Assembly: GCA_044892505.1 (NCBI GenBank)
Contig: CM097882.1
Span: forward strand, 25,730,001-25,794,000
Direction: 5' to 3'
Source of the DNA: Schmidtea nova
Taxonomy: Eukaryota
DNA length: 64,000 nt
Both the position numbers and the translations under genes were made by a program. Under the pieces are notes generated by a model that saw nothing but the letters and a program-made list of their open reading frames with translations, was not told the DNA's origin and did not search any database. Shown here one piece after another: positions 1-20,652 of this stretch (positions are counted from its first letter, which is position 1; every line of letters begins with the position of its first letter).

Positions 1-119
1 GCTTTTCAGAAATGTCCTGAATTTTTTACATTTATTACTTATTCTACTCATCATTATTTTAAAGACCTAGTAATTGTAAAAAAATTGAAATATTCACCGG
101 AATACCCTTCTACTGAAGT

Positions 120-828
120 TCAAAAGAACATAATAAACAAGCCTTGTAAAATCATCAATTTTACGGCCAAATAATAATTTTTATTCTTAGCAACCAATTT
201 GTCCTTCATAACAGCATCAATGTCAATCATCAAATGAAAGGCCAAATAAGCAACCAATAGGCCTCCAAATGTTTCATTTATTTGCCAATAAGTGAGCAAC
301 TCGAGCTTGTTACCATCAGGCTGCGGCCTGCAATGAACACTACGAAAAAGAATAGAGAAAGGCTCTGAGATTTGTTCTGCTATTGATTTGAGACCAAGAA
401 AACCAGCACGCTTCAGGGATTTGTATAACGCTGTTGAGTTGTTTATTTGCATCATGAATAAATGGTATCACACCAGGCACAGTGAAACATTTTACGCAGT
501 CATAATCTCCTTTTATCACTTTTGCGCTGCACATCTTTGTAAATGTGATCAATGATTTAGCTAAATCCGTCCTCAAAGACACTTCTGAATCGTTGTAAAT
601 TGATATTAGAATAGTCAATAATGATGATGAAATGTTGCTGCTGTTTTCTGAATATCGTTGGCTCTGAATATACATCATGGCTTTTTGAAACGTTTCAAAA
701 TTATCATCAGGTTCAGGTGATTCTGTATAATCGGGAAGAGGCCATTCATCAAATTCTATATAATCTTCATTTAGAACTGCACTGTTCATTAGTAAAAATT
801 TGTATCTCAAATTTCCAGCCAAAATCAT
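120..828 (-). CDS. Unidentified host-like coding region in two overlapping ORFs (340-828 and 120-455); frameshifted or spliced
   Basis: Two overlapping minus-strand ORFs with ordinary amino-acid composition and higher GC than the flanks; no recognisable motif. Confidence 0.3.
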
Positions 829-1005
829 AAATCCATTGAATTATTCAAAATCATCAAAATCGAAAAATAAATTGTTCTCATAAATCCACAAATCAATTAA
901 TATTCATAATAATTCCAAAATCCATTAATCCGATCATACATTTAAAAAAAAAACCCAATCCCAAAACTCCAAAATCACACGATAAAACAAAAACTCCAAA
1001 TCCAA

Positions 1006-1093
1006 GCGCACACAGACGCTGATAGCAGAAATATACAAACTACACGCACACAGACGCGATATAAAATAAATATTTAGCTACGCACACAGACGC
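1006..1093. promoter_or_regulatory. Three copies of the motif CGCACACAGACGC upstream of the left host-like gene
   Basis: Exact 13-mer at 1007-1019, 1045-1057 and 1081-1093; reverse complement at about 63962-63974 upstream of FKBP6. Confidence 0.45.
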
Positions 1094-1113
1094 AGTACAA
1101 ATTAATAATTAAC

Positions 1114-1384
1114 GTGTTGTGTCGGACCAATTGATGACGGAATTCTTTTTTCCTGTGTTCAGTGCTGAAAGAGGTGCTGTTATGTGAGATGCGTTTTTAA
1201 TGAATCTATGGCAGAAGTTGACGATGCCTAAAAAGCTACGTAGTTGTGTCACGGTGGTTGGCAGGGAAAAGCTGCGGATTACGTCAAGTCTTTCGGGGAA
1301 AGGTTCACAACCAGTAGATGAAAGTATATGGCCAAGGAATCTGACGCGTTCTTGAAACAAGCTACATTTGTTTATGTTTATCTG
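1114..1384 (-). pseudogene. 3' part of the RT / RT-RNase H connection of Gypsy element A, truncated at about 1114
   Basis: KCSLFQERVRFLGHILS...LRSFLGIVNFCHRFIKNASHITAPL. Removing element B and one TSD copy restores the in-frame read RHNLQININKCSLF with 14291 onward. Confidence 0.9.
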
Positions 1385-2427
1385 TGTTAGAAGATGGGCG
1401 TAGAATAAAGGTTTTAAAATTAAAACATTATACAGTAGGAAATGGAAGATACAGGATAAATATACATGTGGATCAGATGGCAATGACAATTCAATAATCA
1501 ATGGAAAATATCAAATTCAACGACATTATATGATGATATTTTACTGTTGATCTCATTTGACTTTTCTTTTATTATATGATGACTATCTGGCAATTTTTAT
1601 TTTTATGGGATAATTTTATTTTGTTTCTGTTAATAAAATTTGTTGACAATTAATTTTTGTAATGACAATTTATCAGCATGACAATTTATAATTTGACAAT
1701 TTATCATTTGTGATATTGCGAACATTTATTGGCATTTTTATGGTGATGGACAAAATTTTATATAATTTTGAAAAAATATTTTGTGTTGAAAATATTTTAT
1801 GTAAATTAATTTTTTAACTATTTGGAAAATGGATTATATTTTCATTTATATTTTAATATTTTAATTCAATAAATAATAATAATAATAAAATAAATAAATA
1901 AATAGTACAGGTTGTTTAAATAAATTAAAAAAATAAATAAATTACTGTTTGTTTAAATAAATTATATTTCTGACCTACAAGGTCAGGAAAATGAAATAAT
2001 ATCTCAAGGTTAAAAAATAATTTTGAAAACAATTCTGTTTTGAAAACAACTCTATTTTCAAAAACAATTTCAATCAACTCAAGAGGCAAAATAACAATCA
2101 TTATTGACAGATTAAGTGCCTTAAAATTTAGTATATAAACTGACTGATTTTTCAGTTAAATGACCCATAAAATCTTTGCGTAAGAAGAATTTCATAGTTG
2201 TTATCGACTATTGAAATAATAATTTCGAGCATACAAGATATCGAGCTCAGAAGGCATTCACACATACACACGCATACATATATATTTACACATTATAGGA
2301 ATAACATTGTGAATCTGTAATATTTTTTAGGTAATTTGTATTTGTTGTATTTGAATAAAATCTTTGAACCAGTATTATCTTATTTATTTATATAAGATAC
2401 CAAGTTGAGATTCTGGGAACCTCAACA
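1385..2427 (+). repeat. 5' LTR of element B
   Basis: Starts TGTTAGAAG, ends CCTCAACA; matched 13248-14290 wherever compared by eye. Confidence 0.97.
2132..2359 (+). promoter_or_regulatory. Putative LTR promoter and processing signals: TATATAAA (2132), Inr-like TCAGTT (2152), splice-donor-like AG|GTAATT (2331), AATAAA (2354)
   Basis: Motifs in this order, with counterparts in the diverged solo LTRs near 18.5-18.9, 21.6-22.0 and 28.6-28.9 kb. TATA-Inr spacing is shorter than canonical. Confidence 0.5.
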
Positions 2428-2429
2428 TT

Positions 2430-2447
2430 TGGTGCCGCGAACCGGGA
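2430..2447 (+). promoter_or_regulatory. Primer-binding site, tRNA-Phe-like
   Basis: TGGTGCCGCGAACCGGGA 2 nt after the 5' LTR; complementary to a tRNA 3' end ...UCCCGGUUCGCGGCACCA. The tRNA identity (Phe) is inferred. Confidence 0.7.
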
Positions 2448-2628
2448 ATAAATTAAAGTGAATAAATCAATTTGGGGGATAGGAATTGAGATCAGAGGGA
2501 TATTATATATTGGGATTATTTATAAATATAAAAAATTATTGGACATTAAATTTTTGAGATAATAGTGAAGTAACATTGATAATCAACCCGAAATAATTTA
2601 TAATTTGAGAAACCGAATAGTATATAGA

Positions 2629-5600
2629 ATGGCGCAAAATAATGAAAATAATGATAATATAAGACATATTTGGCAAAATAGAGATGAGGATAATAATAAC
2701 CGTAACATTTTGATAAAAACATTACCCATAGAGCATTATAGGGGTGAACCTGAAAAATTTGATGATTTTTTCGATGAAATTGCTCAGTGTGCAGAAGCTT
2801 GTGGATGGACAAGAGATGAATTAAAAAGAAGAATACCGTTATATTTAAAGGGGTATGCATTACAAGCATATAATAATTTAGAGTGTAAGGGTAGAAATTG
2901 GGAAGATTTAGTTGATAATTTGAGAGGTGAAATAGTAATCGAGCGAGATTTACAAAAGATAAATGTACAAATATTTCGAAATAGATATCAAGGGAGCAGA
3001 GAAACAATTGGAGAGTATGTTTATAATTTAACTGAATTAGCTCGAAAGGCCTTCGGTGTGGGAGAACATACTACAAGACTAATTGAGGATCAATTTTGGA
3101 ATGGTATCCAAAAACATCTATACAAATCTTTGATCATGGTAGAATATGAGAATTTAAATGAGTTAGTACAAAAGGCACGAAGAATTGAAGCAATACAGAG
3201 GGATAGATTTAGTTCTGTGATTGATGCAGTAGAAATTCAGGAAATTGAAAAAGAAAAAACCAAGTCAAACGATAAAGATGATAACATTCCTTGGGAGGAG
3301 ATGAAGCAGCTATATTTGAATTATGTTAAAAATAGGAGAAAGACTAGTCCAAGTCCGAGTCGTAGTTTTGACAACAATAATAGATTTAATAGTCCGAGAG
3401 GCAGATCGAATAATCGAAATAATGATCATTTGGAATTTAATGATAAAAATACTTATGTGGGGAATTATAGAGATAATTATTATAATCGAGATAGTAGGGG
3501 TCGAGGAAACTATAATAGAGATGGTCGTTTTAGAAATAGTGGGTACAATAGAAATAATCGTTTTAACGATAATCCAAGCAACAGGAGTAATTATTTCGAA
3601 TATACCCGAACAAATCGATTTACCGAAAATAGAAATAGTGATAATAGAAACAATTTCGAAATAAATAGAAACAATTATAGAGGACGGAGAATGAGTCCCA
3701 CTCGACAAACTTTTGATAGAGATAGACGATCGAGTCCGTTTAGTAACGATGGGAGAGATAAAGTTAATTTTCGCGGAGAAATAAGATGCTTCAACTGTCA
3801 GAAATATGGCCATATGGCAAAAGCATGTAAAAATGCACGAGTCGAATCTCCAAATAGAGTTCAATTTAAGAAAGAGCCTGAAATTAAACAAATAAATAGT
3901 ATGGAGGTTAAAGAGTCGAATAATGAAATTGAGATGCTGAGAGATGAATTACAAGAATTTAAAACAAAATATGAGAGATTAATCGAAAGAAATAAAATTA
4001 ATGTTTCGATAAACGAATTTAAAACTTTCACCAATGAAGTTAAGATAGATAATGAAGAGTTGAGACAGCAAAGAGAAAGAGATGAACAGTTTTTTGCAGA
4101 ATTAGATAGACAGAATACTTTGAGACAGGAATTAGAGGAATCCTTGAGAAATTATCTAGTTGATGATAATGAAGTTTTGAGAATATTAAATAAAATTCAT
4201 GTGGAAGGAATAAATCTGGAGAATCTGAGAAATTTGATACCATCATTAGTAAAGAAACAAAGAGTAACCCAATTATTTGAATTGGAAATTGAAATTAAAG
4301 AGATGTTGAAATGTTATAGCGATTATGTTCGAAAAAACGAAAGATTACAGGAGCCACTAGAAATTACATTAGAAACAAGTGATAAAGATACACCTAGAAT
4401 AATTGTCCATAAACAAGGGGTACATGCGTGTACAAAGGTAAAAAAGATGAAACAAATAGCCAGAGCAAATTGGTATGCCGATCTAGGAATAAATGATGAG
4501 ATAATATTGCATTTTTCTGGGATGAAGATGCAAAACGAAGATTGTTTAATGGATTATGGGATAAACGCCAGTGAAAATAACGTCATAACAGTTTCAATAA
4601 AAAGTGGTTTAGGAGTAGCCAACAAGAAAATTTCAAAACTAAGCCCAGACAAAGAAGATAAGGAAGAGACCGCGAGAGGAGCTATAGGAGGTATAATGAC
4701 CTTTACGTTGGAGGAAAAAAGACTCCCAAAATTAAAGAATAATAACATTGCTGAAAAACTGAAAGAAATTGCAAACAAAACGTCAACGAAAGATAAGGAC
4801 GTTGATGTACTAGTAGAGTTAATAAAAATCATGTATCCTAAAGTATATGAACACACAGGATCTCCATCATTTATTATTAATATATATAAAAAAATTGAAG
4901 TTATAGAGTCAGAGATTAAAGGATTAACAAAGCAAGAAGCGGATGAAGGCGAAGTTTTAGATATTTTATTTACTACTGGAATTGATGAAAATAGAATTAT
5001 AACAGCAATTGCGTATCTTATTTATAGATCAGAGGATGTTCTGAAGATGAAACCAAAGAAATTAAGTAAAATTGCTAAAAGGATATTTACAAGGTTACAA
5101 AATAATGTGATACCTTGGATACATGCAAATGGAGGATGGGAAATCTTAAGAGGAAAAGATGAATCAATGGAGATAAGCGCAGAACAACAATGTACTAATG
5201 ACAAAGAAATTGAAAGAAAATTGAAGAAAATAATAGATAAAACGACGAAGAAATCAGGGAAAAGTGATCATAAATCATTTATATCCACAATAATAGTGAT
5301 GATAGCAATATTATTAAGTATATTAAAAGGGTGTACGGGCATGATAGCATACGACTGTCAGAACCCGAAATGGGGACAAAAATATTCACTATTAGATATA
5401 GAAAACTGTCCAGAAGCGAACCCGATTAACTTAATTACAACCGAACCTAGATTATATCATGTGTATCAGGAATCAGATTTTATACATACCGAAGCGAGAG
5501 AATGTATAATAAGATATTCAGAAGAGGCTTTTGTATGTCACAGCATAGCGCGGACAATCTTAAGGCCCTCATTTACACCGGATACTATTACGATAACTCC

Positions 5601-8600
5601 ACAAGAATGTGAACATGCATTTCAATCAAAAAAGATAAAAATACATGAAATTGAATTAAAAGCACAGATAGGTGCACGTGTAAAACAACGAGTTGATGTA
5701 GTTGGATGGTCTTCACATGGTGGATATTGTCAAGGTGGAGAATACAAGATATGGGGACATACTATAAAAAATGCCGTTGTGAGAAGAGAATATATTGTTG
5801 AACTTAGACAATTTAAGGCATCTTTCGATAGCGTAACACAAAAGATGATGACATACCCATTCTGTACATCAAAAGAAATAAGCTGTGATACCGGAGAATC
5901 AATTGTAATATATAAAGTCGATTCGTATGAATGTCCTTTGACCAAATTAAAATCACTAAAATTCATGACTATAAGAGGCAAACAATTTACAAACTCAGAG
6001 TCAACAAAAATAAAAGATAGAAAAAGAAAGACAATAGTAGTTCAAGAAAAAGATACACCAACGATATACATGACAGAATCTTCAGGAGAAGCAATGAGAT
6101 TTGTAAGCAAAGGAGAAAGTGTAAAGTGTGGGAGATCAATAATACAGACCAATTATAAGGGTATATATCTAAGCAAAGATGAAATAAAAGATGCAAAACT
6201 AAAAGTCAATAAATACGATGTCAAACTTTCATCCTACTTTAATAATAAGATAGATTACTTTTACCATCACCAACTAATGCAACTAGATAGAGTATACCAA
6301 GAAACTATTATAAATGATTGTAAGCTTAATCGAGAAATCTTAAGAACAAAGATGGCACTAGCTATCACAAACCCAGACTTAATGGCCCCAATGCTTTTTT
6401 CAGAAAGAGGCGCTTTTGCAAGAGTTGTAGGGGAAGTCATACAAACATTTCAATGTAAACCAGTCAGTGTAGCACTAGCCACAAACAAACAATGTACAAA
6501 CGAATTACCTGTCATATATAAAGGAGAAAGAGTTTACCTACAACCAATTACACGAATACTAACAGACAAAAACTATACACCAAAGAAGATTGATAAATGT
6601 ACAAATTTATTGGATCCTTTATATCAACTAGATGATGAAACATGGATAACAATGTCAGATAAGAAGGTAGCAATAACACCTTTGAAACTTGAAATGACAG
6701 AATTAGATAAAAAACTCGAATTCTTCGAAGTAAATGATTTTGATAGCAATGGGTTATATTCAAAAGAAGCTATAGAAAGCGCAAGAAAACACTTATTATT
6801 CCCCAATGAAAAAGAAAAGGTATTAACAGTTATCGCCAGTAAAATAATAGAGAACAGCCATGATGGAAAATATAACTTTGATATACTTCTATCAAAAGAA
6901 CACTTTAAAAAGGTAGTTTACAAAGTTTTATATAGTATTTGGGGATATTTTGCAATCTTAGGTAACACATTCTCAACTATACTTGGCATTTACTATTCAG
7001 TTGCATTACTGAAAATGATATGTTCATCATTAGTATCACTTAGACAATTAAGGCAGGTATTTGGTAATTCATTCAAAATGTTGGCTTGTTTATGTCCATT
7101 TGTTGCGAAATACTTGATAACAGCAAAACATGATAAAGATATTAAAAGGATAATTAGAAAAACGGAAGAAGACAGATTAATGGACGAAAATGTAAATGAA
7201 GAAAATAATCATACAAGTGAGTCTGAAAACATTGAACAACCACAAGGGGGACCATACATCATACATATGGAGCAATTGAAAAGTCTACAAAACGAGATTG
7301 AAGTCAAAATACCTGTGGAAAAACATAGTGGTAATATATTCACAAAAAAACCTAAAAGAATATATGGATGCTATGGAATAGAAGAAGGAGAAGAAGCAAA
7401 TGGAATGAGACCAAGAACTCAAATAAAGATAAATAATCAAACTATAAATGCGTTAGTAGACACAGGTGCAGCAGCATCATTAATAGAAAATGAGTTATTA
7501 ACTGAACAACAACGTCAAAGCATTAGACCGACAAATGATGAACTAGTATCCCTTTCTTCACACACAATACCTATCAGAGGAAATATCGAACTTACAGTTC
7601 ATTTCGAAAATCAAAGAATAAACCATGTGTTTAGGGTAGCAAATATATGCCAAAGAAAATGTATACTAGGTATAGACATCCTTAAAAAATTGAAAGGGTA
7701 TGTAATAGATCTATCAGATAATAAAATAAAAAGAAAGATAAATAAGACCCACCGAAGTGATATAAACATTTACGCAATGGAAGAATTTGAATTGGAATAC
7801 GAAAGTGATAATATTATACCTATAAAAGTAAATGTTCAAAGCGAAGATACATACGTTTTCGAACCAAATACTAACATCGCAAAAAATAACAATATTATGG
7901 TAGCAAATGAATGTGTAATGCCAAAGAAAGGTGTAATCCCAGTAAGAATTGCAAACTTTGAGAATAAAAAGGTTAAAATTCATAAAGGTACAAAGTTGGG
8001 ACAATTATCTAAATGTGATTTGAACAAACATGAAATAGGAGAATTATACATCATGGGAAATGACCTCGAAAAGAGCTTCGAACAAAATTCAAAAAATAAT
8101 ATTAAATTCTATGATAAAATTAAAATAACTAATAATTATTTGACCGCAACACAACTACAACAGTTACAAACCTTAATTGATGAGTATAATGATGTTTTTG
8201 CCAAACATGAATTTGACCTAGGAGATACTGATATTATAAAACATGTAATTGATACAGGAAATGCCAGACCATTAAAACAAAGACCTTATGTAACTCCTTA
8301 TAAACTTAGGGAAGAAATAAAAAGACAAATCAACGAATTAAAAGGAGCAGGAGTAATTAGACAAAGTTTTTCACAATGGGCATCACCTATAGTACCAGTT
8401 AGAAAGAAAGATGGTGAGATAAGGATGTGCATCGATTATAGAAAATTAAACGAAGTTACAGTTAAAGATTCATATCCGTTCCCTAAAGCACAAGAACAAT
8501 ATGATAAACTTAGAGGTGCTAAATATTTTACAGTTATAGACGCAAATAAGGGATATATGCAAATTCAAATAGAAGAAGGAGATATAGAAAAATCAGCATT

Positions 8601-11550
8601 CGTGATTGAAGATGAGTTATATGAATTTTTAAGATTACCATTCGGGATGGTAAATGCACCAGCAACATTTCAAAGATTGATGAACACCATACTAATAGAT
8701 GTTCAACACTGTGCCGTTTATATGGATGACATACTGATAGCATCAAAAACATTCGAAGGACATCTTCAAGACATAAAAAATGTATTAGAAAGATTTCGAA
8801 AATCTAAACTAAAAATCAAACCTACCAAATGTAAATGGGCAGAATCGTCTGCATTATATTTAGGACATATTGTATCAATTGATGGCATCATTCCAAATCC
8901 AGATAAGATTAAAACAGTACAACAGTTTCCTATTCCAAAAAATGTAAAAGAAATACAAGGATTCTTAGGTTTAACAGGATACTATCGAAAATTCATAGAA
9001 AATTATGCTAAAATTGCAGCCCCATTAATTGAATTAACAAAGGGAGTAAAAACAAAAGAAGATGGGAGAAAAACACAAATAGTACAAAAAATAAATAAAG
9101 ATAATGGAAAGTCACAAAAAATATGGACGCAACGACAACAAACTGCTTTTGAGCAACTCAAAGAAAAATTAGTAACAGCTCCAATATTAAGATACCCGGA
9201 TTTCACAAAACAATTCATCATTATGACGGATGCTAGTGGAAAAGCTGTAGGAGCAGTCTTAGGTCAGGAAGAAGAAAAGGGCAAAGATTACGTCATAGCA
9301 TATGCAAGTAAAACATTAAAAAGTGCGGAAACCCGATATTCAACTATAGAAAAAGAATGTTACGCAATAATGTTCGCACTTAGACAATTCAAACAATACA
9401 TATATGGATCAGAAGTATTAATACGAACGGACCACAAACCATTAGAAGGATTATGGAAACATAAAGATACATCAAGTAGATTACTAAAATGGGCAATGAA
9501 AATACAAGATATGCATGTAAAAATTATTTATAAACCTGGTCGAATAAACAAAAACGCAGACGCATTATCACGAATACCAGAATTAAGCGTATTAGAAATT
9601 TTTGCCGTGGTGGCTGAAAATCCAATAGATATATACCAAGAACAAATAGACGATTCTGAACTTAGTAAAGTAAGAGAGGAAGTTATTAAAGGAAGAAATA
9701 ACAAATTTAAATTAAGCAAAAATGTATTAATGATGGAAGATATTACAGGTAAACAACTTATAGTAGTACCACAGAAGTTGAAACAAATACTTTTATTACA
9801 ATATCACGATGGTGCACTCGGAGGACATCTTTCAGCTAGAAAAACAGCAAATAGATTATTACAAAAATACTATTGGGAAAATCTTAAAAATGATGTAAAG
9901 CAATGGTGTAACTCATGCACAATATGTGCCACTCGAAAAAATACGGGAACAAGAACAAAAGCCCCACTCCATCCAATACCGGTAATAAATTCGCCAATGG
10001 AATTATGCGCTATGGATTTTTTATGCAAATTACCCGTCACAATTAAAGGTAACAGACATATCTTAGTCTTCAGTGATTATTTTACAAAGTGGGCAGAAGC
10101 TTTTCCGACTAAAGATGAGACCGCAGAAACAGTAGCCAAATTATTAACAGAAAAAATAATATTTAGAATTGGGACACCAAAGAAGTTACTCACAGACAGA
10201 GGAAAGAATTTCATGAGTGAAATAATTCAAAGACTAGCAAATATCTTTGACATACAGAAAATAAATACGACTGCATATCACCCTCAAACAGATGGCCTAG
10301 TTGAACGATTTAATGGCACACTATTAAATAGGTTATCAGTTTTTGTAAACAAAAATCAAAACGACTGGGATGAGTATGTAAATCAATGTACCTACATTCA
10401 CAATATAACCCCTAATGAGACAACAGGATACTCTCCATATTATTTAATGTATTTACGTGAACCAATTACACCAATTGATACAACATTTGAACCGAAAATA
10501 TCACAATACTTAGATACCCCGGACTATGTCACTTTAATGCAAGAAAGACTACAAGAAGTTTACAAAATAGCTGATCTAAAAATTAAATTTCGCCAAGAAC
10601 AATATAAAGATGGATATGACAAAACAACAAAACCCCATAATTTCAAAGTAGGAGATAAGGTTAGACTTATGTCACCTCAAATAGGAAAAGGTAAAACAAA
10701 GAAATTAGCAAGACCATATAAAGGTCCATATGAAGTTGTAAAATTAACGCATGAAAACTTACATTTACAAAAACACAAAAATGATGACCCAATTATTGTC
10801 CATGTCAATAGATGTAAACTAGCAGAGAACGATTTACCAACAATAAGATCACACAGATACAATCTAAGGTCCAAACCGCAAAATATATTGATGATATCAA
10901 TAACCATTCTCACAATTATCAACATAGTCAATTCAGAATTAATTAACAATGATGATGTTACAATAAAAATAAATTACAATAACATTATAATCGTTGATAT
11001 AAAGAAAGACCTTATAAACCAGTTCTATTTAAGATTTACCAATGGTTCATACACTAAAATTGTAGAAAAAACGAAAGATAATAGAAAAAGTTATATCGCC
11101 AAATATGAAAATTTACAAGCTAATACAATATACTATTTTTGCTTAGAAACACCAATATGGGGATTTAAAAAGACTCAATGTCAAATATTAAAAACCGGAA
11201 ACCAAAAACCTACCACACCCATCACCAGATACATACCTCAAAGAATATTTAAAAATCCAAAACAACCTAAAATCTCAAAATCCCAAAAATGGATTAAAAT
11301 ACCAATAAATAAGCCCTCAACAATAATAAACAACTGGGAGGAATTCCAAAATTTATACCATCATCAACAAAAACCGTTATATAAAAGATGGCCGTTTTAT
11401 ATTATAATATTCAGTATAATATTACTAACAATAATAATAATATGGATGAGCACGCAAACCTATAGAAAGTATAAGTGGAAGAGACAGCGTTATCGGAGTC
11501 ATCTCGTCCAATACGTCCCAGGGAGATATACTTTATCTACATTATGTTAA
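2629..11550 (+). CDS. Single polyprotein: Gag(CA, CCHC NC)-Ubl-Bcl-2-like-Env (class III fusion glycoprotein)-PR-RT-RH-IN-membrane protein. True ATG at 2629
   Basis: CFNCQKYGHMAKAC (3787); LHFSGMKMQNEDCLMDYGI; PWIHANGGW; IAYDC...YSLLDIENC; LVDTGA (7453); YMDD (8719); TDASGKAVGAVL; HDGALGGH...CNSCTIC; MDF/TDRG/VERFN; GPY; two hydrophobic signal-like segments and TM segments. Confidence 0.95.
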   Translation: MAQNNENNDNIRHIWQNRDEDNNNRNILIKTLPIEHYRGEPEKFDDFFDEIAQCAEACGWTRDELKRRIPLYLKGYALQAYNNLECKGRNWEDLVDNLRGEIVIERDLQKINVQIFRNRYQGSRETIGEYVYNLTELARKAFGVGEHTTRLIEDQFWNGIQKHLYKSLIMVEYENLNELVQKARRIEAIQRDRFSSVIDAVEIQEIEKEKTKSNDKDDNIPWEEMKQLYLNYVKNRRKTSPSPSRSFDNNNRFNSPRGRSNNRNNDHLEFNDKNTYVGNYRDNYYNRDSRGRGNYNRDGRFRNSGYNRNNRFNDNPSNRSNYFEYTRTNRFTENRNSDNRNNFEINRNNYRGRRMSPTRQTFDRDRRSSPFSNDGRDKVNFRGEIRCFNCQKYGHMAKACKNARVESPNRVQFKKEPEIKQINSMEVKESNNEIEMLRDELQEFKTKYERLIERNKINVSINEFKTFTNEVKIDNEELRQQRERDEQFFAELDRQNTLRQELEESLRNYLVDDNEVLRILNKIHVEGINLENLRNLIPSLVKKQRVTQLFELEIEIKEMLKCYSDYVRKNERLQEPLEITLETSDKDTPRIIVHKQGVHACTKVKKMKQIARANWYADLGINDEIILHFSGMKMQNEDCLMDYGINASENNVITVSIKSGLGVANKKISKLSPDKEDKEETARGAIGGIMTFTLEEKRLPKLKNNNIAEKLKEIANKTSTKDKDVDVLVELIKIMYPKVYEHTGSPSFIINIYKKIEVIESEIKGLTKQEADEGEVLDILFTTGIDENRIITAIAYLIYRSEDVLKMKPKKLSKIAKRIFTRLQNNVIPWIHANGGWEILRGKDESMEISAEQQCTNDKEIERKLKKIIDKTTKKSGKSDHKSFISTIIVMIAILLSILKGCTGMIAYDCQNPKWGQKYSLLDIENCPEANPINLITTEPRLYHVYQESDFIHTEARECIIRYSEEAFVCHSIARTILRPSFTPDTITITPQECEHAFQSKKIKIHEIELKAQIGARVKQRVDVVGWSSHGGYCQGGEYKIWGHTIKNAVVRREYIVELRQFKASFDSVTQKMMTYPFCTSKEISCDTGESIVIYKVDSYECPLTKLKSLKFMTIRGKQFTNSESTKIKDRKRKTIVVQEKDTPTIYMTESSGEAMRFVSKGESVKCGRSIIQTNYKGIYLSKDEIKDAKLKVNKYDVKLSSYFNNKIDYFYHHQLMQLDRVYQETIINDCKLNREILRTKMALAITNPDLMAPMLFSERGAFARVVGEVIQTFQCKPVSVALATNKQCTNELPVIYKGERVYLQPITRILTDKNYTPKKIDKCTNLLDPLYQLDDETWITMSDKKVAITPLKLEMTELDKKLEFFEVNDFDSNGLYSKEAIESARKHLLFPNEKEKVLTVIASKIIENSHDGKYNFDILLSKEHFKKVVYKVLYSIWGYFAILGNTFSTILGIYYSVALLKMICSSLVSLRQLRQVFGNSFKMLACLCPFVAKYLITAKHDKDIKRIIRKTEEDRLMDENVNEENNHTSESENIEQPQGGPYIIHMEQLKSLQNEIEVKIPVEKHSGNIFTKKPKRIYGCYGIEEGEEANGMRPRTQIKINNQTINALVDTGAAASLIENELLTEQQRQSIRPTNDELVSLSSHTIPIRGNIELTVHFENQRINHVFRVANICQRKCILGIDILKKLKGYVIDLSDNKIKRKINKTHRSDINIYAMEEFELEYESDNIIPIKVNVQSEDTYVFEPNTNIAKNNNIMVANECVMPKKGVIPVRIANFENKKVKIHKGTKLGQLSKCDLNKHEIGELYIMGNDLEKSFEQNSKNNIKFYDKIKITNNYLTATQLQQLQTLIDEYNDVFAKHEFDLGDTDIIKHVIDTGNARPLKQRPYVTPYKLREEIKRQINELKGAGVIRQSFSQWASPIVPVRKKDGEIRMCIDYRKLNEVTVKDSYPFPKAQEQYDKLRGAKYFTVIDANKGYMQIQIEEGDIEKSAFVIEDELYEFLRLPFGMVNAPATFQRLMNTILIDVQHCAVYMDDILIASKTFEGHLQDIKNVLERFRKSKLKIKPTKCKWAESSALYLGHIVSIDGIIPNPDKIKTVQQFPIPKNVKEIQGFLGLTGYYRKFIENYAKIAAPLIELTKGVKTKEDGRKTQIVQKINKDNGKSQKIWTQRQQTAFEQLKEKLVTAPILRYPDFTKQFIIMTDASGKAVGAVLGQEEEKGKDYVIAYASKTLKSAETRYSTIEKECYAIMFALRQFKQYIYGSEVLIRTDHKPLEGLWKHKDTSSRLLKWAMKIQDMHVKIIYKPGRINKNADALSRIPELSVLEIFAVVAENPIDIYQEQIDDSELSKVREEVIKGRNNKFKLSKNVLMMEDITGKQLIVVPQKLKQILLLQYHDGALGGHLSARKTANRLLQKYYWENLKNDVKQWCNSCTICATRKNTGTRTKAPLHPIPVINSPMELCAMDFLCKLPVTIKGNRHILVFSDYFTKWAEAFPTKDETAETVAKLLTEKIIFRIGTPKKLLTDRGKNFMSEIIQRLANIFDIQKINTTAYHPQTDGLVERFNGTLLNRLSVFVNKNQNDWDEYVNQCTYIHNITPNETTGYSPYYLMYLREPITPIDTTFEPKISQYLDTPDYVTLMQERLQEVYKIADLKIKFRQEQYKDGYDKTTKPHNFKVGDKVRLMSPQIGKGKTKKLARPYKGPYEVVKLTHENLHLQKHKNDDPIIVHVNRCKLAENDLPTIRSHRYNLRSKPQNILMISITILTIINIVNSELINNDDVTIKINYNNIIIVDIKKDLINQFYLRFTNGSYTKIVEKTKDNRKSYIAKYENLQANTIYYFCLETPIWGFKKTQCQILKTGNQKPTTPITRYIPQRIFKNPKQPKISKSQKWIKIPINKPSTIINNWEEFQNLYHHQQKPLYKRWPFYIIIFSIILLTIIIIWMSTQTYRKYKWKRQRYRSHLVQYVPGRYTLSTLC

Positions 11551-11761
11551 ATTAAAATACCCAATCATAAACGATCTATTATATTATCCAATAATATTTA
11601 AAAAATTATTTTACCCAATAGAAACTGATCAAATTTTACTATATAAATGTCCAATAATTTATAAAAATCACCCATATCTAAATAGATATTATATTGCAAA
11701 TAGGGGTAATCTCTATCTTTGCATTAATATATATATTCTATTAATTATTCTTTTTAGAAAA

Positions 11762-13360
11762 ATGAATTCAAAAGAGCCATCAACTTCGAACCCAACCAAT
11801 CCAAAAACAATGAAATACACACAAATATACACATGCAAGACATACAAACACCCACTAACATTCTACAAAGCATTACAAAATAACATAAAGGCAGATGGAG
11901 AAGAACTCACAATTAGAAAATACCCACATCAAGTATGTATACCCAACGAGTTCAAGGTAGACACAGAAGAAAGAGAGATGTACCTAGTTAAGTTTAACAT
12001 AGCAAAGAGAACAAAACTTAGAGACATTATAGGCTATTTTGAACCAAGCCAGAATGTAGATAAAGATACCAAAGAAGGCAAAAGAATCCCACATAGGATA
12101 GTGATTCACGCCACGAAAACAGAACTTACAATAAAATTCAAAGAAACAACGTTAGCCACCATAAGTAAAGCAACAGCGGTGTTTAAGACAATAAAATATA
12201 GAAAAATGGCGAATGATTTTAATAACATCACGATACAAATTCATAATATACCTTGCGTAATGGCTATAGAAATCCTATATGTTCCAAAAATAAACAATCC
12301 TTTTGAAAAATCGGAAATAATTATGGCTGAGATCAGGATGAATGAAGATTTTATAGAAAACAAAACACCATTCACAAAGAAAGTATTGACGATCGAGGAA
12401 AGAAGAGAGAAAATAGTTTTTATGGATGTAAAAACAGTAAAAGATTATAATCATCAAATAAAACCCATAGATATTCATATCAGAAAATATAATGGAGACT
12501 GTGTATTTAAAACGAAAATTACCCCAAGGACTAAAATACAAATGGACAAAATAGAGAAAGATTCAATATTGGGGAATATGGATGAATTCGAAGCACTAAT
12601 AGAAATAAAAAAACATTTATACAATAAAATAATTATCGGATTTGACATTATGGAAAAATTAAGAAGTATATACATCAGTTTAGATGATGTTTTAGGAATA
12701 AGAGAAATGTCAAATAATGTCTATACGAAAACTTTTGTAAAGAATGTCCCGGAAGATAAGATAAGATTATCTAATCTTGCTTTCCAGATCATCAAACTCA
12801 AAAGCGATTTACGGAGAAATAAAAAACTCAACGACATTCTACTTAAACCAGAGCCATTTAGCGTACAAGACACCTGTATGATAGTCAGGATTCTATACTT
12901 GATAACTGAAAACGACTGGGAAAATTACATAGAACAGCAAATGAAAGAAATAACTAAGAAACCCAGAAATGAGAGCACAAGCAATCAAACGAATCAAACA
13001 GAGGATGAGGACGAAGTGCAATTCATCAAAGAAGAGCGACCAAATGTTGAACTTATGGACACAATAGAAGATGAACTAGGACCAGAGCCAATGATCACTA
13101 TAGAGGACACACAAGAAGAAAAATATATCACATTAATATATGATAAAAACATTAAAATGACAACAGTAACAATAGATGAAGATGAAATAGATGTATTCTT
13201 TGTAAAAAAAGGTTATGAGGACATAACCTTAACGCCCCAGGGAGTAATGTTAGAAGATGGGCGTAGAATAAAGGTTTTAAAATTAAAACATTATACAGTA
13301 GGAAATGGAAGATACAGGATAAATATACATGTGGATCAGATGGCAATGACAATTCAATAA
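11762..13360 (+). CDS. Accessory ORF2 of element B (532 aa, unknown function); its 3' end lies inside the 3' LTR
   Basis: Long open frame with the element's codon bias, preceded by a splice-acceptor-like TTATTCTTTTTAG ending at 11757; stop at 13360 lies inside the LTR that starts at 13248. Confidence 0.85.
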   Translation: MNSKEPSTSNPTNPKTMKYTQIYTCKTYKHPLTFYKALQNNIKADGEELTIRKYPHQVCIPNEFKVDTEEREMYLVKFNIAKRTKLRDIIGYFEPSQNVDKDTKEGKRIPHRIVIHATKTELTIKFKETTLATISKATAVFKTIKYRKMANDFNNITIQIHNIPCVMAIEILYVPKINNPFEKSEIIMAEIRMNEDFIENKTPFTKKVLTIEERREKIVFMDVKTVKDYNHQIKPIDIHIRKYNGDCVFKTKITPRTKIQMDKIEKDSILGNMDEFEALIEIKKHLYNKIIIGFDIMEKLRSIYISLDDVLGIREMSNNVYTKTFVKNVPEDKIRLSNLAFQIIKLKSDLRRNKKLNDILLKPEPFSVQDTCMIVRILYLITENDWENYIEQQMKEITKKPRNESTSNQTNQTEDEDEVQFIKEERPNVELMDTIEDELGPEPMITIEDTQEEKYITLIYDKNIKMTTVTIDEDEIDVFFVKKGYEDITLTPQGVMLEDGRRIKVLKLKHYTVGNGRYRINIHVDQMAMTIQ

Positions 13361-14290
13361 TCAATGGAAAATATCAAATTCAACGACATTATATGATGAT
13401 ATTTTACTGTTGATCTCATTTGACTTTTCTTTTATTATATGATGACTATCTGGCAATTTTTATTTTTATGGGATAATTTTATTTTGTTTCTGTTAATAAA
13501 ATTTGTTGACAATTAATTTTTGTAATGACAATTTATCAGCATGACAATTTATAATTTGACAATTTATCATTTGTGATATTGCGAACATTTATTGGCATTT
13601 TTATGGTGATGGACAAAATTTTATATAATTTTGAAAAAATATTTTGTGTTGAAAATATTTTATGTAAATTAATTTTTTAACTATTTGGAAAATGGATTAT
13701 ATTTTCATTTATATTTTAATATTTTAATTCAATAAATAATAATAATAATAAAATAAATAAATAAATAGTACAGGTTGTTTAAATAAATTAAAAAAATAAA
13801 TAAATTACTGTTTGTTTAAATAAATTATATTTCTGACCTACAAGGTCAGGAAAATGAAATAATATCTCAAGGTTAAAAAATAATTTTGAAAACAATTCTG
13901 TTTTGAAAACAACTCTATTTTCAAAAACAATTTCAATCAACTCAAGAGGCAAAATAACAATCATTATTGACAGATTAAGTGCCTTAAAATTTAGTATATA
14001 AACTGACTGATTTTTCAGTTAAATGACCCATAAAATCTTTGCGTAAGAAGAATTTCATAGTTGTTATCGACTATTGAAATAATAATTTCGAGCATACAAG
14101 ATATCGAGCTCAGAAGGCATTCACACATACACACGCATACATATATATTTACACATTATAGGAATAACATTGTGAATCTGTAATATTTTTTAGGTAATTT
14201 GTATTTGTTGTATTTGAATAAAATCTTTGAACCAGTATTATCTTATTTATTTATATAAGATACCAAGTTGAGATTCTGGGAACCTCAACA
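13248..14290 (+). repeat. 3' LTR of element B
   Basis: Same termini and length as 1385-2427; preceded by a short purine tract AGGGAGTAA. Confidence 0.97.
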
Positions 14291-15480
14291 TCTGTAAGTT
14301 GTGACGGTTCAATATATCAAGGATCGTGTGTAAATCGTTTTTGTGGCTTTCTCGATCCGGGGACGCTATGATGATATCGTCAAGGTATGCGAAAGTGTGA
14401 GGGACATCGCGAAAAATTGTGTCCATGAAACGTTGTGGGGACTGAGCTGCGTTTCTAAGACCAAAAGGCATGAACATGTATTCAAAATTCCCAAATGGTG
14501 TAGTGACAGCCGTTTTGTGGACGTCGTCCGTATGGATGGGAAATTGGTGGTATGCTTTCGAGAGGTCTATAGTTGAGAACACTGTAGATTGTGAAAAGCG
14601 TGTTATTAAATCTTTAATGAGTGGCATTGGGTAGGCGTCGTGGACTGTTACTTGGTTGAGCTGTCGATAATCTCCACAGGGTCTGAATGACCCGTCTTTT
14701 TTTGTTACTACGTGTATTGGCAAAGCCCATGGTGAAGATGAACGACGTATAATGCCTGCGTTTTCTAGACTAACAAATTCAGCTTTGACTGCGTCGAGTT
14801 TCGTGGAAGAGAGAGGTCTGGCTCGATTGTGTTGTGGTATGCATGGTAATGTGTGAATATAGTGAGTCGATAGGGTAGTGGGTGGTATGGTATCGGATTT
14901 AGTTATGAGGTTTGGATATTTGGTTGAAATTAATTTGATCATGTCATCGATCGTATCTAGATTGGCTGATTGGTCGATGTCCAACGTGTTTTTATCGTTT
15001 TCCATCGTGGAATCTTGATGAATCGAGTTGAGTTGTGTCGGTGTAAATGTCTGCGTTGAAATTGATGTTACATTTGACGATGAAATTGTCGGTATATTGG
15101 CAATGTCTTGTTTTACAGTGAACAACTTACGATTTTTGCAATCTACCATGATGGATTCGTTGCTTAAAAAATCGGAGCCTAATATTGGGTGGATAGTGTC
15201 TGCTATGTGGAAGGTGTGAGGGAAAGTTGAGTTTAATGTTGATATTGTGAATGAGAGTTTTTTTGTTCCCAAAAATTGGATCGGTGTGCTGTTAGCGGCC
15301 AAGGCAGTGAACGAAGATTTGAAGTCTGGTGTGAAAGTTGTTGGAAGGATTGAAAATGACGAGCCCGAATCTATGAGAAAATGAATTGATGAGCTGGAGT
15401 CGAAGTCTGCTTCAACAGTGAAGATACTGTTGATCGCAAGGACGCTGCCTGAAAATCCAGGGTTGACAGACAGTGGCGCT
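14291..15480 (-). pseudogene. Pol (protease + RT) of element A, 5' portion
   Basis: FLIDSGSSFSILP, ILGSDFL, SSSPWALPIHVVTKKDGSFRPCGDYRQLN, PFGLRNA, YLDDIII. The ORF-track tail (MLRFPESQ...) is read-through into the LTR. Confidence 0.9.
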
Positions 15481-15490: not shown

Positions 15491-16389
15491 GGGAGAATTG
15501 AAATTGTTTTTGTCGTATGATTTATTTGAGGAACGGTTTACAAAAGTGCAACCTGAAAGGCATTTTTGTGCATGTATACCGAGATATTGTGATAGATGCA
15601 AATAGAAATGATCCTCAAAGTGGAAGGAGGGTTTGGCCATGAACATCCTATATGGCATGTTCTTGCGTCGGATGAGAATTTCTTGTGAAAAAAACAAGTC
15701 AGAGGGGGGAAAGAATTTGGTTTATCGTTTCTTTGGGTGTGTGTAGTTAGCTGAGAGGAGTTGAGTATCGCGTCGACTGTTTTTGTCAGAGAAGATATCT
15801 GTTCCTGTAATGAAGGGTCGGAAACTGATGCGATGGTAGTTGGTGCGTTTCGGATGGGGGGTCGAGTAACCAACTTATCAGCAATTTTTGCAAGGTGAAA
15901 AGGATCATCGGAATCCACGACGAGAAGTGAGGTCTGGATGTGATGTGGAAGAGCTGTTAAAAATTGATGGCATAAGAGAGCAGTGTTTTTTGATAAACCG
16001 GTGTGGGCGGCCTCGAGTTCGCGTACTAGTTGCGATAAAAAGGATGATGGGGGTTGACCGGCGTATGGGGTGGGTTTTGATAACTTTTCGATCGCTGAAG
16101 TGCGCGTGGGTGAATATTTTTTTTCTATGACCGCTTTGATTGATTCATAAAGGGTTTCTGAGTTTAATGCGTCAGCTATTTGTGAGCCTAATTCTGACAT
16201 TAACTCGTCGGGTATTGCATCCAGCAGAAGATCTTGCCTAGACTTGGGATTGGCTCTAGTGCGCGATTCAAAAATGCGGAACCAAGATGATGGTGTGCCG
16301 TCTGCGTCTAAAAATATCAGTTGAGTGCGACCTATGGACGTGGGAGGGTTATGATCATTGTTAGTTTTGGCACCGCCTCTTGCCCGCAT
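15479..16389 (-). CDS. Gag of element A with two CxxHxx(F/Y)xxxAxxCxxxC knuckles (second one frameshifted)
   Basis: CFFHKKFSSDARTCHIGCSW; the second knuckle CIYH / QYLGIHAQKCLSGCTF is split across frames and ends SPKKN*. Confidence 0.85.
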
Positions 16390-16829
16390 GAAGAGTGTTA
16401 TTATTGCGTTTGTTGGGACTGAAAGAGGATCTGTGATGGGAACTCCGTTATTTAAAATAAAGAAGTCGTTGTGTTCTATTAAAAAAAACGTTTAATATCG
16501 TTAAAAAAGTTTGTCGTGGTAATTTTAACTGAGTGAATAATATTTTTGTGGCGTACAGTGATGTTGAGTAAGCCGTCATGAAGGGTAAATGGTTGTGAAC
16601 AGGTAGAGGAAACTGTTGTAGTGTTGGTTATAGGAGTATGAAAATTATTATTAAAATAATTATTAAAATTTTTATTGAATATTTTATTAAAATTATTATT
16701 AATATAAATGGAGTAATTAGATGAATTTAAATATTCACATAATAAATTCAAAAAGCTTACGTTTGTCACTTCTGACACCAATTGTAGGAATGCTAAAAGC
16801 AAATAAGATTTTATTAATAGAAATTGATC

Positions 16830-17261
16830 TCCAATTGACAAGTTGGTCTTTGGCAACCGGAAATCCTGACCGATGATAACAAGAGTTGAAATGAGCAAGC
16901 TCCATGACAGTCCGTATTGATTGATTTCTGGTGCTGGCGAATAATCGTTTAATCGAGATTGATTGTGATCCAATGTATTGATTTGTAAATTTTTTGAATT
17001 ATACATTTCAGATTTGTCTGGATAGTATATTAATATTGATCCAGTTGTTGTCAAGCATCTTCCAGTTTGTACGGCTTCTTTACGCATTCCAGCAGCGAAA
17101 CATTTCTGCAATCTACGGAACTGGCAATTGTTTCTTCTTTGAATATCGACTACACAATCTCCTCTAGAGTAGAACTGATAATTGTTGTCATTTGATGAAA
17201 ACGAGTCGCTGTGGATGTCTTGAGTGAATGGGTATATCGAATCATTGTTAACAGCTTGCAT
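16830..17261 (-). pseudogene. Degenerate nuclear receptor fragment (second C4 finger plus T-box, possible LBD start), NR2-like
   Basis: RGDCVVDIQRRNNCQFRRLQKCFAAGMRKEAVQTGR. Two zinc-ligand Cys are replaced and the first finger is not recognisable. Confidence 0.75.
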
Positions 17262-20221: not shown

Positions 20222-20652
20222 CGTTAGAAGATGGATGAACCACGCAAATTTTGAAATTAAAACATTATACAGTAGAGGACAACAAATACAGAATCAAAAT
20301 AAATATACAAGAATGATGCAAGATGCCAGCAATTCAGTTTACCCATCAAAAATTATCTAATAACAATTTGCGATATTGACTAACTTGATTACTTTGAAAA
20401 TTATTTGAAGTTATCTTTATTAGTTTTATTTCATGTGACTAATTAATATTTGGATTTATGTGATAATTCTTATCAACTTTGTGTGAATTTGACAATTTAT
20501 TTTATTTTTATGTGAAAATAATTTGTTTGGTTATTTTATGATTTAAATAATATTGTGATTTTGATTATTAATTTTCACATCTTTATTTTTGTGTTCCACA
20601 ATATAAACATGGTAACGATTTGATTGAAAAAAATAAAAGGTTATCCCGGGTC

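Follow-up and report, generated by a model that had tools for sequence, protein, structure and literature searches.

A Bcl-2-like domain between the capsid and envelope genes of an endogenous retrovirus

Organization of the element

Analysis of a 64,000-nucleotide stretch of an animal genome (hereafter, the window) identified a complete, very young copy of a Ty3/gypsy-type LTR element at positions 1385-14290. The two LTRs are identical over a run of 1,044 nt, begin with TG and end with CA, and are flanked by a 4-bp target-site duplication; a primer-binding site lies two bases after the 5′ LTR. The insertion splits the reverse transcriptase of an older element. A flanking FKBP ORF was noted, and an Rfam search of the window returned nothing. 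The element has the following parts, all on the + strand.

1381-1384, +: target-site duplication TCTG, left copy (the right copy is at 14291-14294)
1385-2427, +: 5′ LTR, 100% identical to the 3′ LTR
2430-2447, +: primer-binding site (TGG..., complementary to a tRNA 3′ end), read directly from the sequence
2605-11550, +: single polyprotein ORF of 2,981 codons, first ATG at 2629, without stops or frameshifts
2629-4209, +: Gag-like region with a CCHC zinc knuckle (3784-3834; Pfam zf-CCHC) and a coiled-coil-rich C-terminal part, similar to Gag of relatives
4210-4605, +: helical block plus ubiquitin-like domain (UBL, about 4360-4584), shared with five related elements
4795-5154, +: Bcl-2-like domain (aa about 731-850), with BH1-like (4966-5019) and BH2-like (5107-5148) segments; the N-terminal boundary is uncertain
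5155-5277, +: lysine-rich linker between the Bcl-2-like domain and the hydrophobic segment
5278-5340, +: hydrophobic segment (aa 892-912), internal signal peptide of the glycoprotein and putative C-terminal membrane anchor of the Bcl-2-like domain
5284-7236, +: class III fusion glycoprotein (Pfam Monjiviricetes_fusion) with its own membrane anchor (about 6937-7035)
7408-7701, +: retroviral aspartyl protease (Pfam RVP)
8398-9510, +: reverse transcriptase (8398-8874; RVT_1) and RNase H (9124-9510; RT_RNaseH_2, RT_RNaseH)
9766-10284, +: integrase, H2C2 zinc domain and catalytic core (Integrase_H2C2, rve)
10873-11547, +: C-terminal tail of the polyprotein, with a second signal-like segment, an ectodomain of about 150 aa and a membrane anchor; no family match, but comparable tails occur in relatives
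11762-13360, +: ORF2, 532 codons, intact, an ISG20/REXO-like DEDDh exonuclease homologue that runs into the 3′ LTR
13248-14290, +: 3′ LTR

The LTRs, target-site duplication and primer-binding site, the CCHC-containing Gag and the PR-RT-RNaseH-IN order with gypsy-type RT_RNaseH_2 and Integrase_H2C2 domains place the element among Ty3/gypsy (Metaviridae) elements of the GAG-ENV-POL, errantivirus-like type. The envelope fusogen (PF24664, aa 894-1544) falls between the zinc knuckle (aa 394-410) and the protease (aa 1602-1699), a layout found in 11 relatives. It scores 292.5 bits (E 6e-87) against a cutoff of 27, over profile positions 3-638 of 653, and is 36-43% identical to the glycoproteins of 12 relatives; no solved structure is related to it by sequence. 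The hydrophobic segment at its start (Kyte-Doolittle peak 2.37) carries small residues at -1/-3 before a conserved mature N-terminus, x-x-[AG]-Y-D-C, shared with relatives. The polyprotein contains neither a 2A-type skipping motif nor a late-domain motif.

Two further modules are the ubiquitin-like domain and the exonuclease-like ORF2. A profile of the relatives' sequences hits aa 536-667 of the window's polyprotein with E 4.8e-10, and a five-sequence profile matches, in PDB, ISG15 (E 1.7e-5), mono-ubiquitin (about 1e-4) and polyubiquitin (down to 1e-37, by repeat summation), whereas the window's sequence alone reaches only E 0.07 with Pfam ubiquitin. A profile of ORF2 hits ISG20L2 at E 3.9e-17 and ISG20 at 4.6e-10; however, the window's copy lacks two of the five catalytic DEDDh residues that two related elements, L001 and L002, keep.

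Sequence evidence for the Bcl-2-like domain

The domain was first suspected from a sequence-only reading, which placed a Bcl-2-family domain with BH1 and BH2 at correct helix spacing, a BH4-like N-terminal helix, an altered BH1 (NWGR to DENR) and a degenerate BH3 within a retroelement polyprotein at 4790-5148. The observation itself is confirmed. All three peptides on which it rested are present in one frame of the + strand inside the long ORF: DVDVLVELIKIMY at aa 732-744 (nt 4798-4836), LFTTGIDENRIITAIAYL at aa 788-805 (nt 4966-5019) and RLQNNVIPWIHANGGWEIL at aa 830-848 (nt 5092-5148). The start coordinate given, 4790, is out of frame by one base, which is of no consequence. The assignment to a retroelement polyprotein holds, as does the spacing, HMMER aligning aa 783-848 to the BH1-BH2 part of Bcl-2 proteins with a single one-residue gap. 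In contrast, the BH4-like helix has no support: the BH4 family was not among the matches at E<=10, and aa 701-829 alone give no Bcl-2 hit. Neither BH3 nor BH4 was detected, and only BH1-BH2 is recognisable in the single sequence.

The match is more than chance would give. The BH2 signature W[ILVM]xx[NDE]GGW occurs once, against about 2e-4 occurrences expected in the six-frame translation of the window and 2e-5 in the polyprotein. Pfam Bcl-2 (PF00452) is the only meaningful family on the segment. It scores 19.0 bits (E 2.2e-3) on the whole polyprotein and 23.8-25.3 bits on segments (E 6.9e-5 on the segment, 2.2e-5 on aa 783-852, 5.7e-5 on aa 726-860), always at profile positions 36-100, yet every one of these scores is below Pfam's gathering threshold of 31.4 bits. 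TIGR00865 (bcl-2) is the top NCBIfam hit, at E 1.4e-3. In a phmmer search of PDB the best 58 hits are all Bcl-2/Bcl-xL, the best being Trichuris suis BCL-2 (6v4m; PMC7456325) with E 7.4e-4, about 30% identity over 64 residues, and PWIHANGGW identical. BH2 alone scores 13.2 bits and BH1-BH2 together 25.3 bits, so that about 12 bits come from BH1/α5/α6 in register.

The BH2 motif, W-x3-GGW at the α7-α8 turn, is present as WIHANGGW at aa 838-845. At the position of the BH1 NWGR, at the start of α5, the window has DENR, retaining the Arg but not the W and G; the flanking G-I and the hydrophobic α5 are kept, and T. suis BCL-2 also lacks the Gly.

Direct searches for relatives of the segment gave nothing: phmmer against 1.84 billion representative proteins returned 0 hits, a word-indexed protein search found none whether the segment was part of the long polyprotein or a 192-aa piece, and pattern scans of IMG/VR and JGI metagenomes with the segment were equally negative. 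Homologues were found only indirectly, by retrieving loci through the glycoprotein alignment and reading the region upstream of the glycoprotein. Three related elements from a JGI metagenome (L006, L007 and L008) carry a 17-23% identical domain at the same place before the glycoprotein signal peptide. The columns conserved among the four are mostly hydrophobic core positions plus the final Trp of BH2; GGW is kept in L006 and L008, whereas the BH1 Arg is not conserved in L006 and L007, making canonical BH3 binding doubtful. The polyprotein ORFs of L006 and L007 are also uninterrupted, which fits retention of the domain. At least eight related elements lack it. The variable region of the ENA relatives P0001-P0007 was considered as a cryptic, further diverged Bcl-2 domain, but this was rejected, since phmmer and two profiles give no signal and the sequences look disordered.

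Profiles built from the homologues again find the Bcl-2 family. The three-sequence profile hits fowlpox FPV039 at E 3.4e-5 over profile 6-136 against chain 11-145 of 148, although with a 9.9-bit composition correction, and A1/BFL-1 at E 2e-3 over 34-133; these are the only proteins to which the N-terminal half of the domain aligns, and it does so only with the multi-sequence profile. The top 60 hits of the four-sequence profile are entirely Bcl-2 family, with Bcl-xL at 1.4e-4 and FPV039 aligned over the whole domain. L008 on its own has Pfam Bcl-2 as its only family (15.1 bits, E 0.034) at the same profile positions, whereas L006 and L007 alone give no Pfam Bcl-2 hit. Without the window's sequence the signal is marginal: the profile reaches only E 0.019 for Bcl-2 and is outranked by de novo designed helical repeat proteins, indicating that the domain is also "generic helical" to HMMER. 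Even so, nearly all natural-protein hits of this profile are Bcl-2 family at the same coordinates.

The Bcl-2 fold is an eight-helix bundle around a central hydrophobic α5-α6 hairpin. AlphaFold2 models of aa 701-912 and aa 726-853, made without an alignment, are all-helical but have pLDDT of only 40 and 50. Foldseek searches of PDB with both models gave no hit at E<0.5; Bcl-xL heads the lists, with TM 0.2-0.42 and an rmsd of about 10 Å, but we do not count this as evidence because Foldseek also scores amino-acid similarity. A hydrophobic segment (aa 892-910) lies 44 residues after BH2 and is preceded by a basic linker, the position of a cellular Bcl-2 tail anchor. The resemblance is one of form only, as the same segment is the signal peptide of the glycoprotein.

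Interpretation

We consider it more likely than not that the element, a Ty3/gypsy-type endogenous retrovirus with Gag-Env-Pol gene order translated as one polyprotein, encodes between the Gag/ubiquitin-like block and the glycoprotein signal peptide a helical domain of about 120 residues that is a diverged member of the Bcl-2 family, most similar to pro-survival members (Bcl-2, Bcl-xL, A1/BFL-1, fowlpox FPV039). This reading is supported but not proven. In this view, four hydrophobic segments predict that Gag, the UBL and the Bcl-2-like domain face the cytosol, that the glycoprotein ectodomain faces the ER lumen, and that Pol returns to the cytosol. Signal-peptidase cleavage after the first hydrophobic segment, together with cleavage by the element's protease upstream, would release the Bcl-2-like domain as a tail-anchored membrane protein, the native arrangement of cellular Bcl-2. 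Its most likely role would be to modulate host cell death or stress/innate signalling while glycoprotein and particles are being made, as viral Bcl-2 homologues do. Our analysis shows the sequence homology (within the limits set by the subthreshold scores), the position of the domain, its conservation in three related elements and the intactness of the element, whereas the fold, the cleavages, the topology and the function, including any binding of BH3 ligands or effect on cell death, are inferred. The interpretation offered by the sequence-only reading is thus partly supported: the presence of a Bcl-2-family domain in a retroelement polyprotein is backed by three HMM libraries, by PDB sequence searches and, most importantly, by the homologues, but the proposal that it is a captured apoptosis or innate-signalling modulator protecting the producing cell is plausible only by analogy with viral Bcl-2 proteins, and its capture from the host remains an inference.

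Two other explanations were weighed. The domain might descend from Bcl-2 but no longer regulate cell death through BH3 binding, having been taken over as a structural or membrane-targeting module, functionally like a retroviral matrix protein, that would tether the Gag part of the polyprotein to the membrane next to the glycoprotein; alternatively, it might act as an innate-signalling antagonist, like the BH-less Bcl-2-fold proteins of poxviruses. The poorly kept groove-defining BH1 residues, the undetectable BH3 and BH4, the mainly hydrophobic-core conservation and the fusion in cis between Gag and the glycoprotein signal peptide in all four elements speak for this view. However, the best matches are bona fide pro-survival proteins, including a viral Bcl-2 homologue, T. 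suis BCL-2 shares the loss of the BH1 Gly, and elements that lack the domain still have the same Gag-Env-Pol layout, so that it is not needed for tethering. We regard this possibility as unlikely, though not negligible.

Less likely still is a chance resemblance, in which a lineage-specific helical linker domain of this retroelement family happens to carry a BH2-like motif in the window's copy, without common descent with Bcl-2 or a Bcl-2 fold. The subthreshold scores, the fact that half of the single-sequence score comes from a nine-residue motif, the marginal profile obtained without the window's copy, the uninformative models and the absence of Pfam hits in L006 and L007 would be consistent with it. 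Against it stand the rarity expected for the BH2 motif, the further bits from BH1/α5/α6 at the right spacing, the finding that adding three diverged homologues keeps or improves the Bcl-2 hits and extends the alignment to the whole domain, the independent Pfam match of L008, the Bcl-2 hits that persist without the window, and the location just before a membrane segment.

A bolder reading, which we put forward only tentatively, is that a lineage of invertebrate endogenous retroviruses (at least four elements) has carried a functional Bcl-2 homologue since before its known members diverged, expressed as a tail-anchored cleavage product of the Gag-Env-Pol polyprotein alongside a ubiquitin-like domain and an ISG20-like exonuclease. 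To our knowledge, this would be the first case of a reverse-transcribing element with a cell-death regulator, and would show that small retroelements can assemble a set of host-derived accessory modules of the kind seen in large DNA viruses. Mimicry of Bcl-2 is a classic strategy of herpes-, pox-, adeno-, asfar- and iridoviruses; we know of no retrovirus or LTR retroelement reported to carry a Bcl-2 homologue, and full-text literature searches found none. If the domain is a working Bcl-2 homologue, control of host cell death would matter even for small germline-resident retroelements that bud with a fusogenic envelope, and a polyprotein could deliver a tail-anchored host-like regulator simply by placing it in front of an internal signal peptide. 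If it has been re-used for another job, it adds a new branch to the radiation of Bcl-2-fold proteins. The presence of the ubiquitin-like domain and the ISG20-like exonuclease in the same elements makes this little-known Gag-Env-Pol family a compact model for how host genes are recruited by reverse-transcribing elements.

Comparison with known systems

Cellular pro-survival Bcl-2 proteins (Bcl-xL, Bcl-2, A1/BFL-1, and T. suis BCL-2 "A" as best single match) share with the domain a colinear BH1-α5-α6-BH2 region with one gap, the hydrophobic α5 and a downstream hydrophobic segment preceded by basic residues. They are stand-alone proteins, whereas the domain is part of a 2,981-residue polyprotein, has the W and G of NWGR replaced and no recognisable BH3 or BH4, scores below the Pfam threshold, and has a "tail anchor" that doubles as the signal peptide of a viral glycoprotein. 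Among viral Bcl-2 homologues of large DNA viruses, the one returned here, fowlpox virus FPV039 (PDB 5TZP), is likewise a diverged Bcl-2-like domain carried by a virus-like element and aligns with the four-element profile over nearly its whole length; weak BH motifs are typical of viral members. The carrier here is a reverse-transcribing LTR element rather than a large DNA virus, and the domain is made as part of Gag-Env-Pol rather than from its own gene, with its function inferred from sequence alone.

Ty3/gypsy "errantiviruses" with GAG-ENV-POL order and a gB-type (class III) envelope have been described in Nematoda, Bryozoa and Platyhelminthes (PMC13524379). They have in common with the present element the LTRs, the tRNA primer-binding site, a Gag with zinc knuckle, a class III fusogen placed between Gag and Pol, the PR-RT-RH-IN order and near-identical LTRs indicating recent activity. 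That paper contains no occurrence of "Bcl-2", "ubiquitin" or "apoptosis"; here everything is one ORF, with UBL and Bcl-2-like domains in front of Env, a second small membrane protein after IN and an exonuclease-like ORF2. Mosquito BEL/Pao elements that captured a chuvirus-like glycoprotein (PMC7642597) and bdelloid rotifer LTR elements that captured extra ORFs such as DEDDy exonucleases (PMC5408684) belong to different retroelement families with a different gene order, and neither report (for PMC7642597, judged from its abstract) mentions a Bcl-2-like or ubiquitin-like domain. What they share with the present element is the modular acquisition, by LTR elements, of a negative-strand-RNA-virus-type glycoprotein and of host-like enzymatic ORFs, ORF2 here being an ISG20-like DEDD exonuclease homologue.

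A complete Gag-Env-Pol retroelement

The three peptides on which the sequence-only reading based its claim of a Bcl-2-family domain in a retroelement polyprotein are all present in one reading frame of the + strand. They map as follows:

4798-4836 (+), aa 732-744: DVDVLVELIKIMY
4966-5019 (+), aa 788-805: LFTTGIDENRIITAIAYL
5092-5148 (+), aa 830-848: RLQNNVIPWIHANGGWEIL

All three lie inside an open reading frame of 2,981 codons (2605-11550) that has its first ATG at 2629 and no stop; the observation itself thus holds. The BH2-type signature W[ILVM]xx[NDE]GGW occurs once in the window, whereas the amino-acid composition predicts about 2e-4 occurrences in all six frames and 2e-5 in the polyprotein.

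The ORF belongs to a complete LTR retroelement at 1385-14290. The LTRs (1385-2427 and 13248-14290) are 100% identical over 1,044 nt, begin with TG and end with CA, and are flanked by a 4-bp duplication, TCTG. The 5′ LTR is followed after two bases by an 18-nt primer-binding site starting with TGG. The element sits inside the reverse transcriptase (RT) of an older gypsy-like element on the minus strand (1145-1384 and 14292-14795, extending to about 17261), whose RT continues across the insertion. This independently fixes the ends of the younger element, whose nested insertion interrupts that RT once (other breaks were left out of this count). Upstream ORFs on the same strand match DUF7041 (15538-16386) and a nuclear-receptor zf-C4 finger (16479-17258); the nuclear-receptor finger suggests an animal host. 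Absence of stops and frameshifts in the polyprotein and in a second ORF (ORF2, see below), together with the identity of the LTRs, points to a very recent insertion. None of the runs of N in the window (21720-21899, 34040-35416, 38423-39001, 48486-49108 and 61833-62994; 3,160 bases in all) touches the element.

Comparison of the polyprotein with Pfam gave the following order of domains (residue numbers):

394-410: zf-CCHC
783-845: Bcl-2, sub-threshold, 19.0 bits
894-1544: Monjiviricetes_fusion glycoprotein, 292 bits
1602-1699: retroviral protease
1932-2090: reverse transcriptase
2174-2302: RNase H
2388-2560: integrase

This is a Ty3/gypsy-type element with Gag-Env-Pol order. Four hydrophobic segments (aa 892-910, 1459-1477, 2761-2779 and 2931-2949) give a self-consistent predicted topology, in which Gag and everything up to aa 891 would be cytosolic, the glycoprotein ectodomain lumenal, PR-RT-RH-IN cytosolic, and a small C-terminal ectodomain lumenal again.

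Elsewhere in the window, a further RT fragment (45032-45634, minus strand; Pfam RVT_1, E 1.6e-12) derives from an unrelated retroelement remnant, and an ORF with an FKBP-type peptidyl-prolyl isomerase domain (62689-63756, minus strand; E 2.3e-11) is probably a host gene or exon.

Sequence evidence for a Bcl-2-like domain

Pfam PF00452 is the only meaningful family on the segment, scoring 23.8 bits (E 6.9e-5) with aa 701-892 and 25.3 bits (E 2.2e-5) with aa 783-852. The match is always to profile positions 36-100, the BH1-to-BH2 part, and all scores fall below the curated cutoff of 31.4 bits. In NCBIfam, TIGR00865 “bcl-2” is the top hit (E 1.4e-3 to 5.4e-3). When all PDB sequences were searched with phmmer, the 58 best hits were all Bcl-2 or Bcl-xL. 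The best of these (6v4m_A, E 7.4e-4) is the BCL-2 “A” protein of the nematode Trichuris suis (PMC7456325); the alignment is colinear with one gap, shows about 30% identity over 64 residues, and PWIHANGGW is identical. As an isolated chance match of WIxxNGGW had been named beforehand as the outcome that would refute the Bcl-2 reading, we split the score. The BH2 piece alone gives 13.2 bits (E 0.14) and the BH1/α5/α6 piece alone no reportable hit, whereas the two together give 25.3 bits. About 12 bits therefore come from the upstream 43 residues in the correct register. On the other hand, aa 701-829 (everything before BH2) give no Bcl-2 signal in Pfam or PDB, and the BH4-like N-terminal helix proposed in the sequence-only reading has no support.

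Direct searches with the segment found no homologue. A search with the glycoprotein, however, identified seven polyproteins with the same layout in ENA metagenome assemblies (P0001-P0007; 36-41% identity in the glycoprotein), and an alignment of the glycoproteins then recovered five JGI metagenome contigs (L006-L010). The ENA relatives have an unrelated, disordered-looking stretch of 130-280 residues where the window has its Bcl-2-like domain. In contrast, three JGI elements from one metagenome (L006, L007 and L008) carry a recognisable homologue at exactly the same place, just upstream of the signal peptide of the glycoprotein, with the same internal spacing as in the window and 17-23% identity to the window's domain. 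L008 was detected by the three-sequence profile at E 1.9e-14. The polyprotein ORFs of L006 (3,426 codons, running to the contig end) and L007 (3,703 codons) are uninterrupted, whereas in L008 one in-frame stop separates the upstream ORF from the glycoprotein. Across the four domains, the invariant columns include hydrophobic α5 positions and the last Trp of BH2; GGW and the first aromatic residue of BH2 are each kept in three of the four.

Profiles built from these sequences were then compared with the PDB. The profile of the window, L006 and L007 has fowlpox virus FPV039 as its best hit (E 3.4e-5, 27 bits after a 9.9-bit composition correction), in an alignment that covers the whole domain (profile 6-136, chain 11-145 of 148). 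A1/BFL-1 follows (E 2e-3, from α2 to BH2), then about 50 Bcl-xL entries. Inclusion of L008 gave 108 hits at E<=1, the top 60 of which are all Bcl-2 family (Bcl-xL 1.4e-4, Bcl-2 1.8e-4, FPV039 2.8e-4). A control profile without the window (L006, L007 and L008) performed more weakly: five de novo designed helical-repeat proteins come first and, although nearly every natural hit after them is Bcl-2 family at the same coordinates, the best E is 0.019. In Pfam, L008 alone has Bcl-2 as its only family (E 0.034, profile 35-100), while L006 and L007 alone have none. Thus, adding three very divergent homologues does not dilute the Bcl-2 signal but improves the Bcl-xL E-value about tenfold and extends the alignment to the N-terminal half, as homology predicts and chance does not. 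The control also shows that the well-kept BH2 motif of the window carries much of the statistical weight. On balance, we consider common descent with the Bcl-2 family likely. The two AlphaFold2 models, both computed without an alignment, are all-helical but of low confidence (pLDDT 40 and 50). Foldseek searches of the PDB with these models found nothing at E<0.5; Bcl-xL entries dominate both lists, but at TM 0.2-0.42 and rmsd about 10 Å.

Predicted processing, putative role and history of the domain

The domain ends at aa about 850 and is followed by a lysine-rich linker of 41 residues and then by the strongest hydrophobic segment of the N-terminal half (aa 892-910). Directly after this comes the conserved mature N-terminus of the glycoprotein (x-x-[AG]-Y-D-C in all relatives), preceded by small residues at -1 and -3. 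This segment is therefore very likely an internal signal peptide cut by signal peptidase. Such a cut would leave the upstream protein anchored in the ER membrane by its C-terminus with the Bcl-2-like domain in the cytosol, which is the topology of cellular Bcl-2; separation from Gag would need the element's own protease.

While the sequence matches, the position of the domain and its presence in three related elements are direct results of the analysis, the fold, the cleavages, the membrane arrangement, any effect on cell death and any origin from a host gene are inferred. Of the interpretation offered by the sequence-only reading, the structural claim, a Bcl-2-family domain inside a retroelement polyprotein, is supported, whereas the functional inference, a captured apoptosis or innate-signalling modulator that protects the host cell, is plausible only by analogy. 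By analogy with viral Bcl-2 homologues, the likeliest role would be to restrain cell death or stress/innate signalling while glycoprotein and particles are produced. Caution is called for, however, as the BH1 residues that shape the BH3-binding groove are poorly conserved: the window has DENR where Bcl-xL has NWGR, and the Arg at that position is not kept in L006 and L007. A re-used, BH3-independent role, as a membrane tether or a signalling antagonist, is therefore a serious rival.

The codon composition of the domain does not differ from the rest of the element (GC3 is 0.19, against 0.19-0.30 elsewhere); the 17-23% identity among bearers also argues for an old acquisition. In a neighbour-joining tree of RT-IN, the window sits on a long, deep branch, whereas L006 and L007 group next to ENA elements that lack the domain. 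The bearers are therefore not a clade in this rough tree, which implies later loss or replacement, or recombination.

Other host-like modules and comparison with known elements

The element carries additional modules in the following positions:

4210-4605 (+): block between Gag and the Bcl-2-like domain, with a ubiquitin-like (UBL) domain at about 4360-4584
10873-11547 (+): C-terminal end of the polyprotein, after integrase
11762-13360 (+): ORF2, running about 110 nt into the 3′ LTR

The first block is shared with five related elements (E 4.8e-10), and the family profile of its ubiquitin-like domain hits ISG15 (E 1.7e-5) and ubiquitin (about 1e-4) in PDB. L007 appears to have two UBL-type matches. 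The C-terminal end of the polyprotein comprises a second signal-like segment, an ectodomain of about 150 aa and a membrane anchor with a basic tail. This small membrane protein has no family match; relatives have longer, cysteine-rich tails of the same design, and it may be a second envelope-associated protein. ORF2 is a conserved post-pol gene of this family, also found after pol in L001 and L002 (contigs carrying related elements). As a profile, it matches the ISG20L2 and ISG20 DEDDh 3′-5′ exonucleases at E 3.9e-17. The window's copy lacks two of the five catalytic residues kept in L001 and L002 and so may be catalytically inactive. Outside the element, a short tblastn match to the C-terminal end of ORF2 (20218-20313, plus strand; 50% over 32 aa, E 1e-4) may be a remnant of another copy or of an LTR-borne ORF end.

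Related elements (P0001, P0003, P0004, P0005; L002-L004) carry other extras, namely three aspartyl-protease domains per polyprotein, C2H2 zinc fingers between the glycoprotein and Pol, and a downstream ORF with ankyrin repeats (L004, L005), so that the family is unusually modular. The contig that carries P0001 (L002) also has, at positions 1-6700, short, fragmented bacterial-type genes (MacB, ABC transporter, TetR). These could reflect a chimeric assembly or horizontally acquired and decaying genes in the host.

A Bcl-2-like domain in a reverse-transcribing element is not known to us, and full-text literature searches found no report of one. The surrounding architecture has precedents. The Gag-Env-Pol gypsy backbone was recently described for gB-type “errantiviruses” of nematodes, bryozoans and flatworms (PMC13524379), and capture of viral glycoproteins and of exonucleases by LTR elements is also known (PMC7642597, PMC5408684). 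On our reading, the element would extend the viral mimicry of Bcl-2, itself already known, to a new class of carrier with a new, predicted mode of expression.
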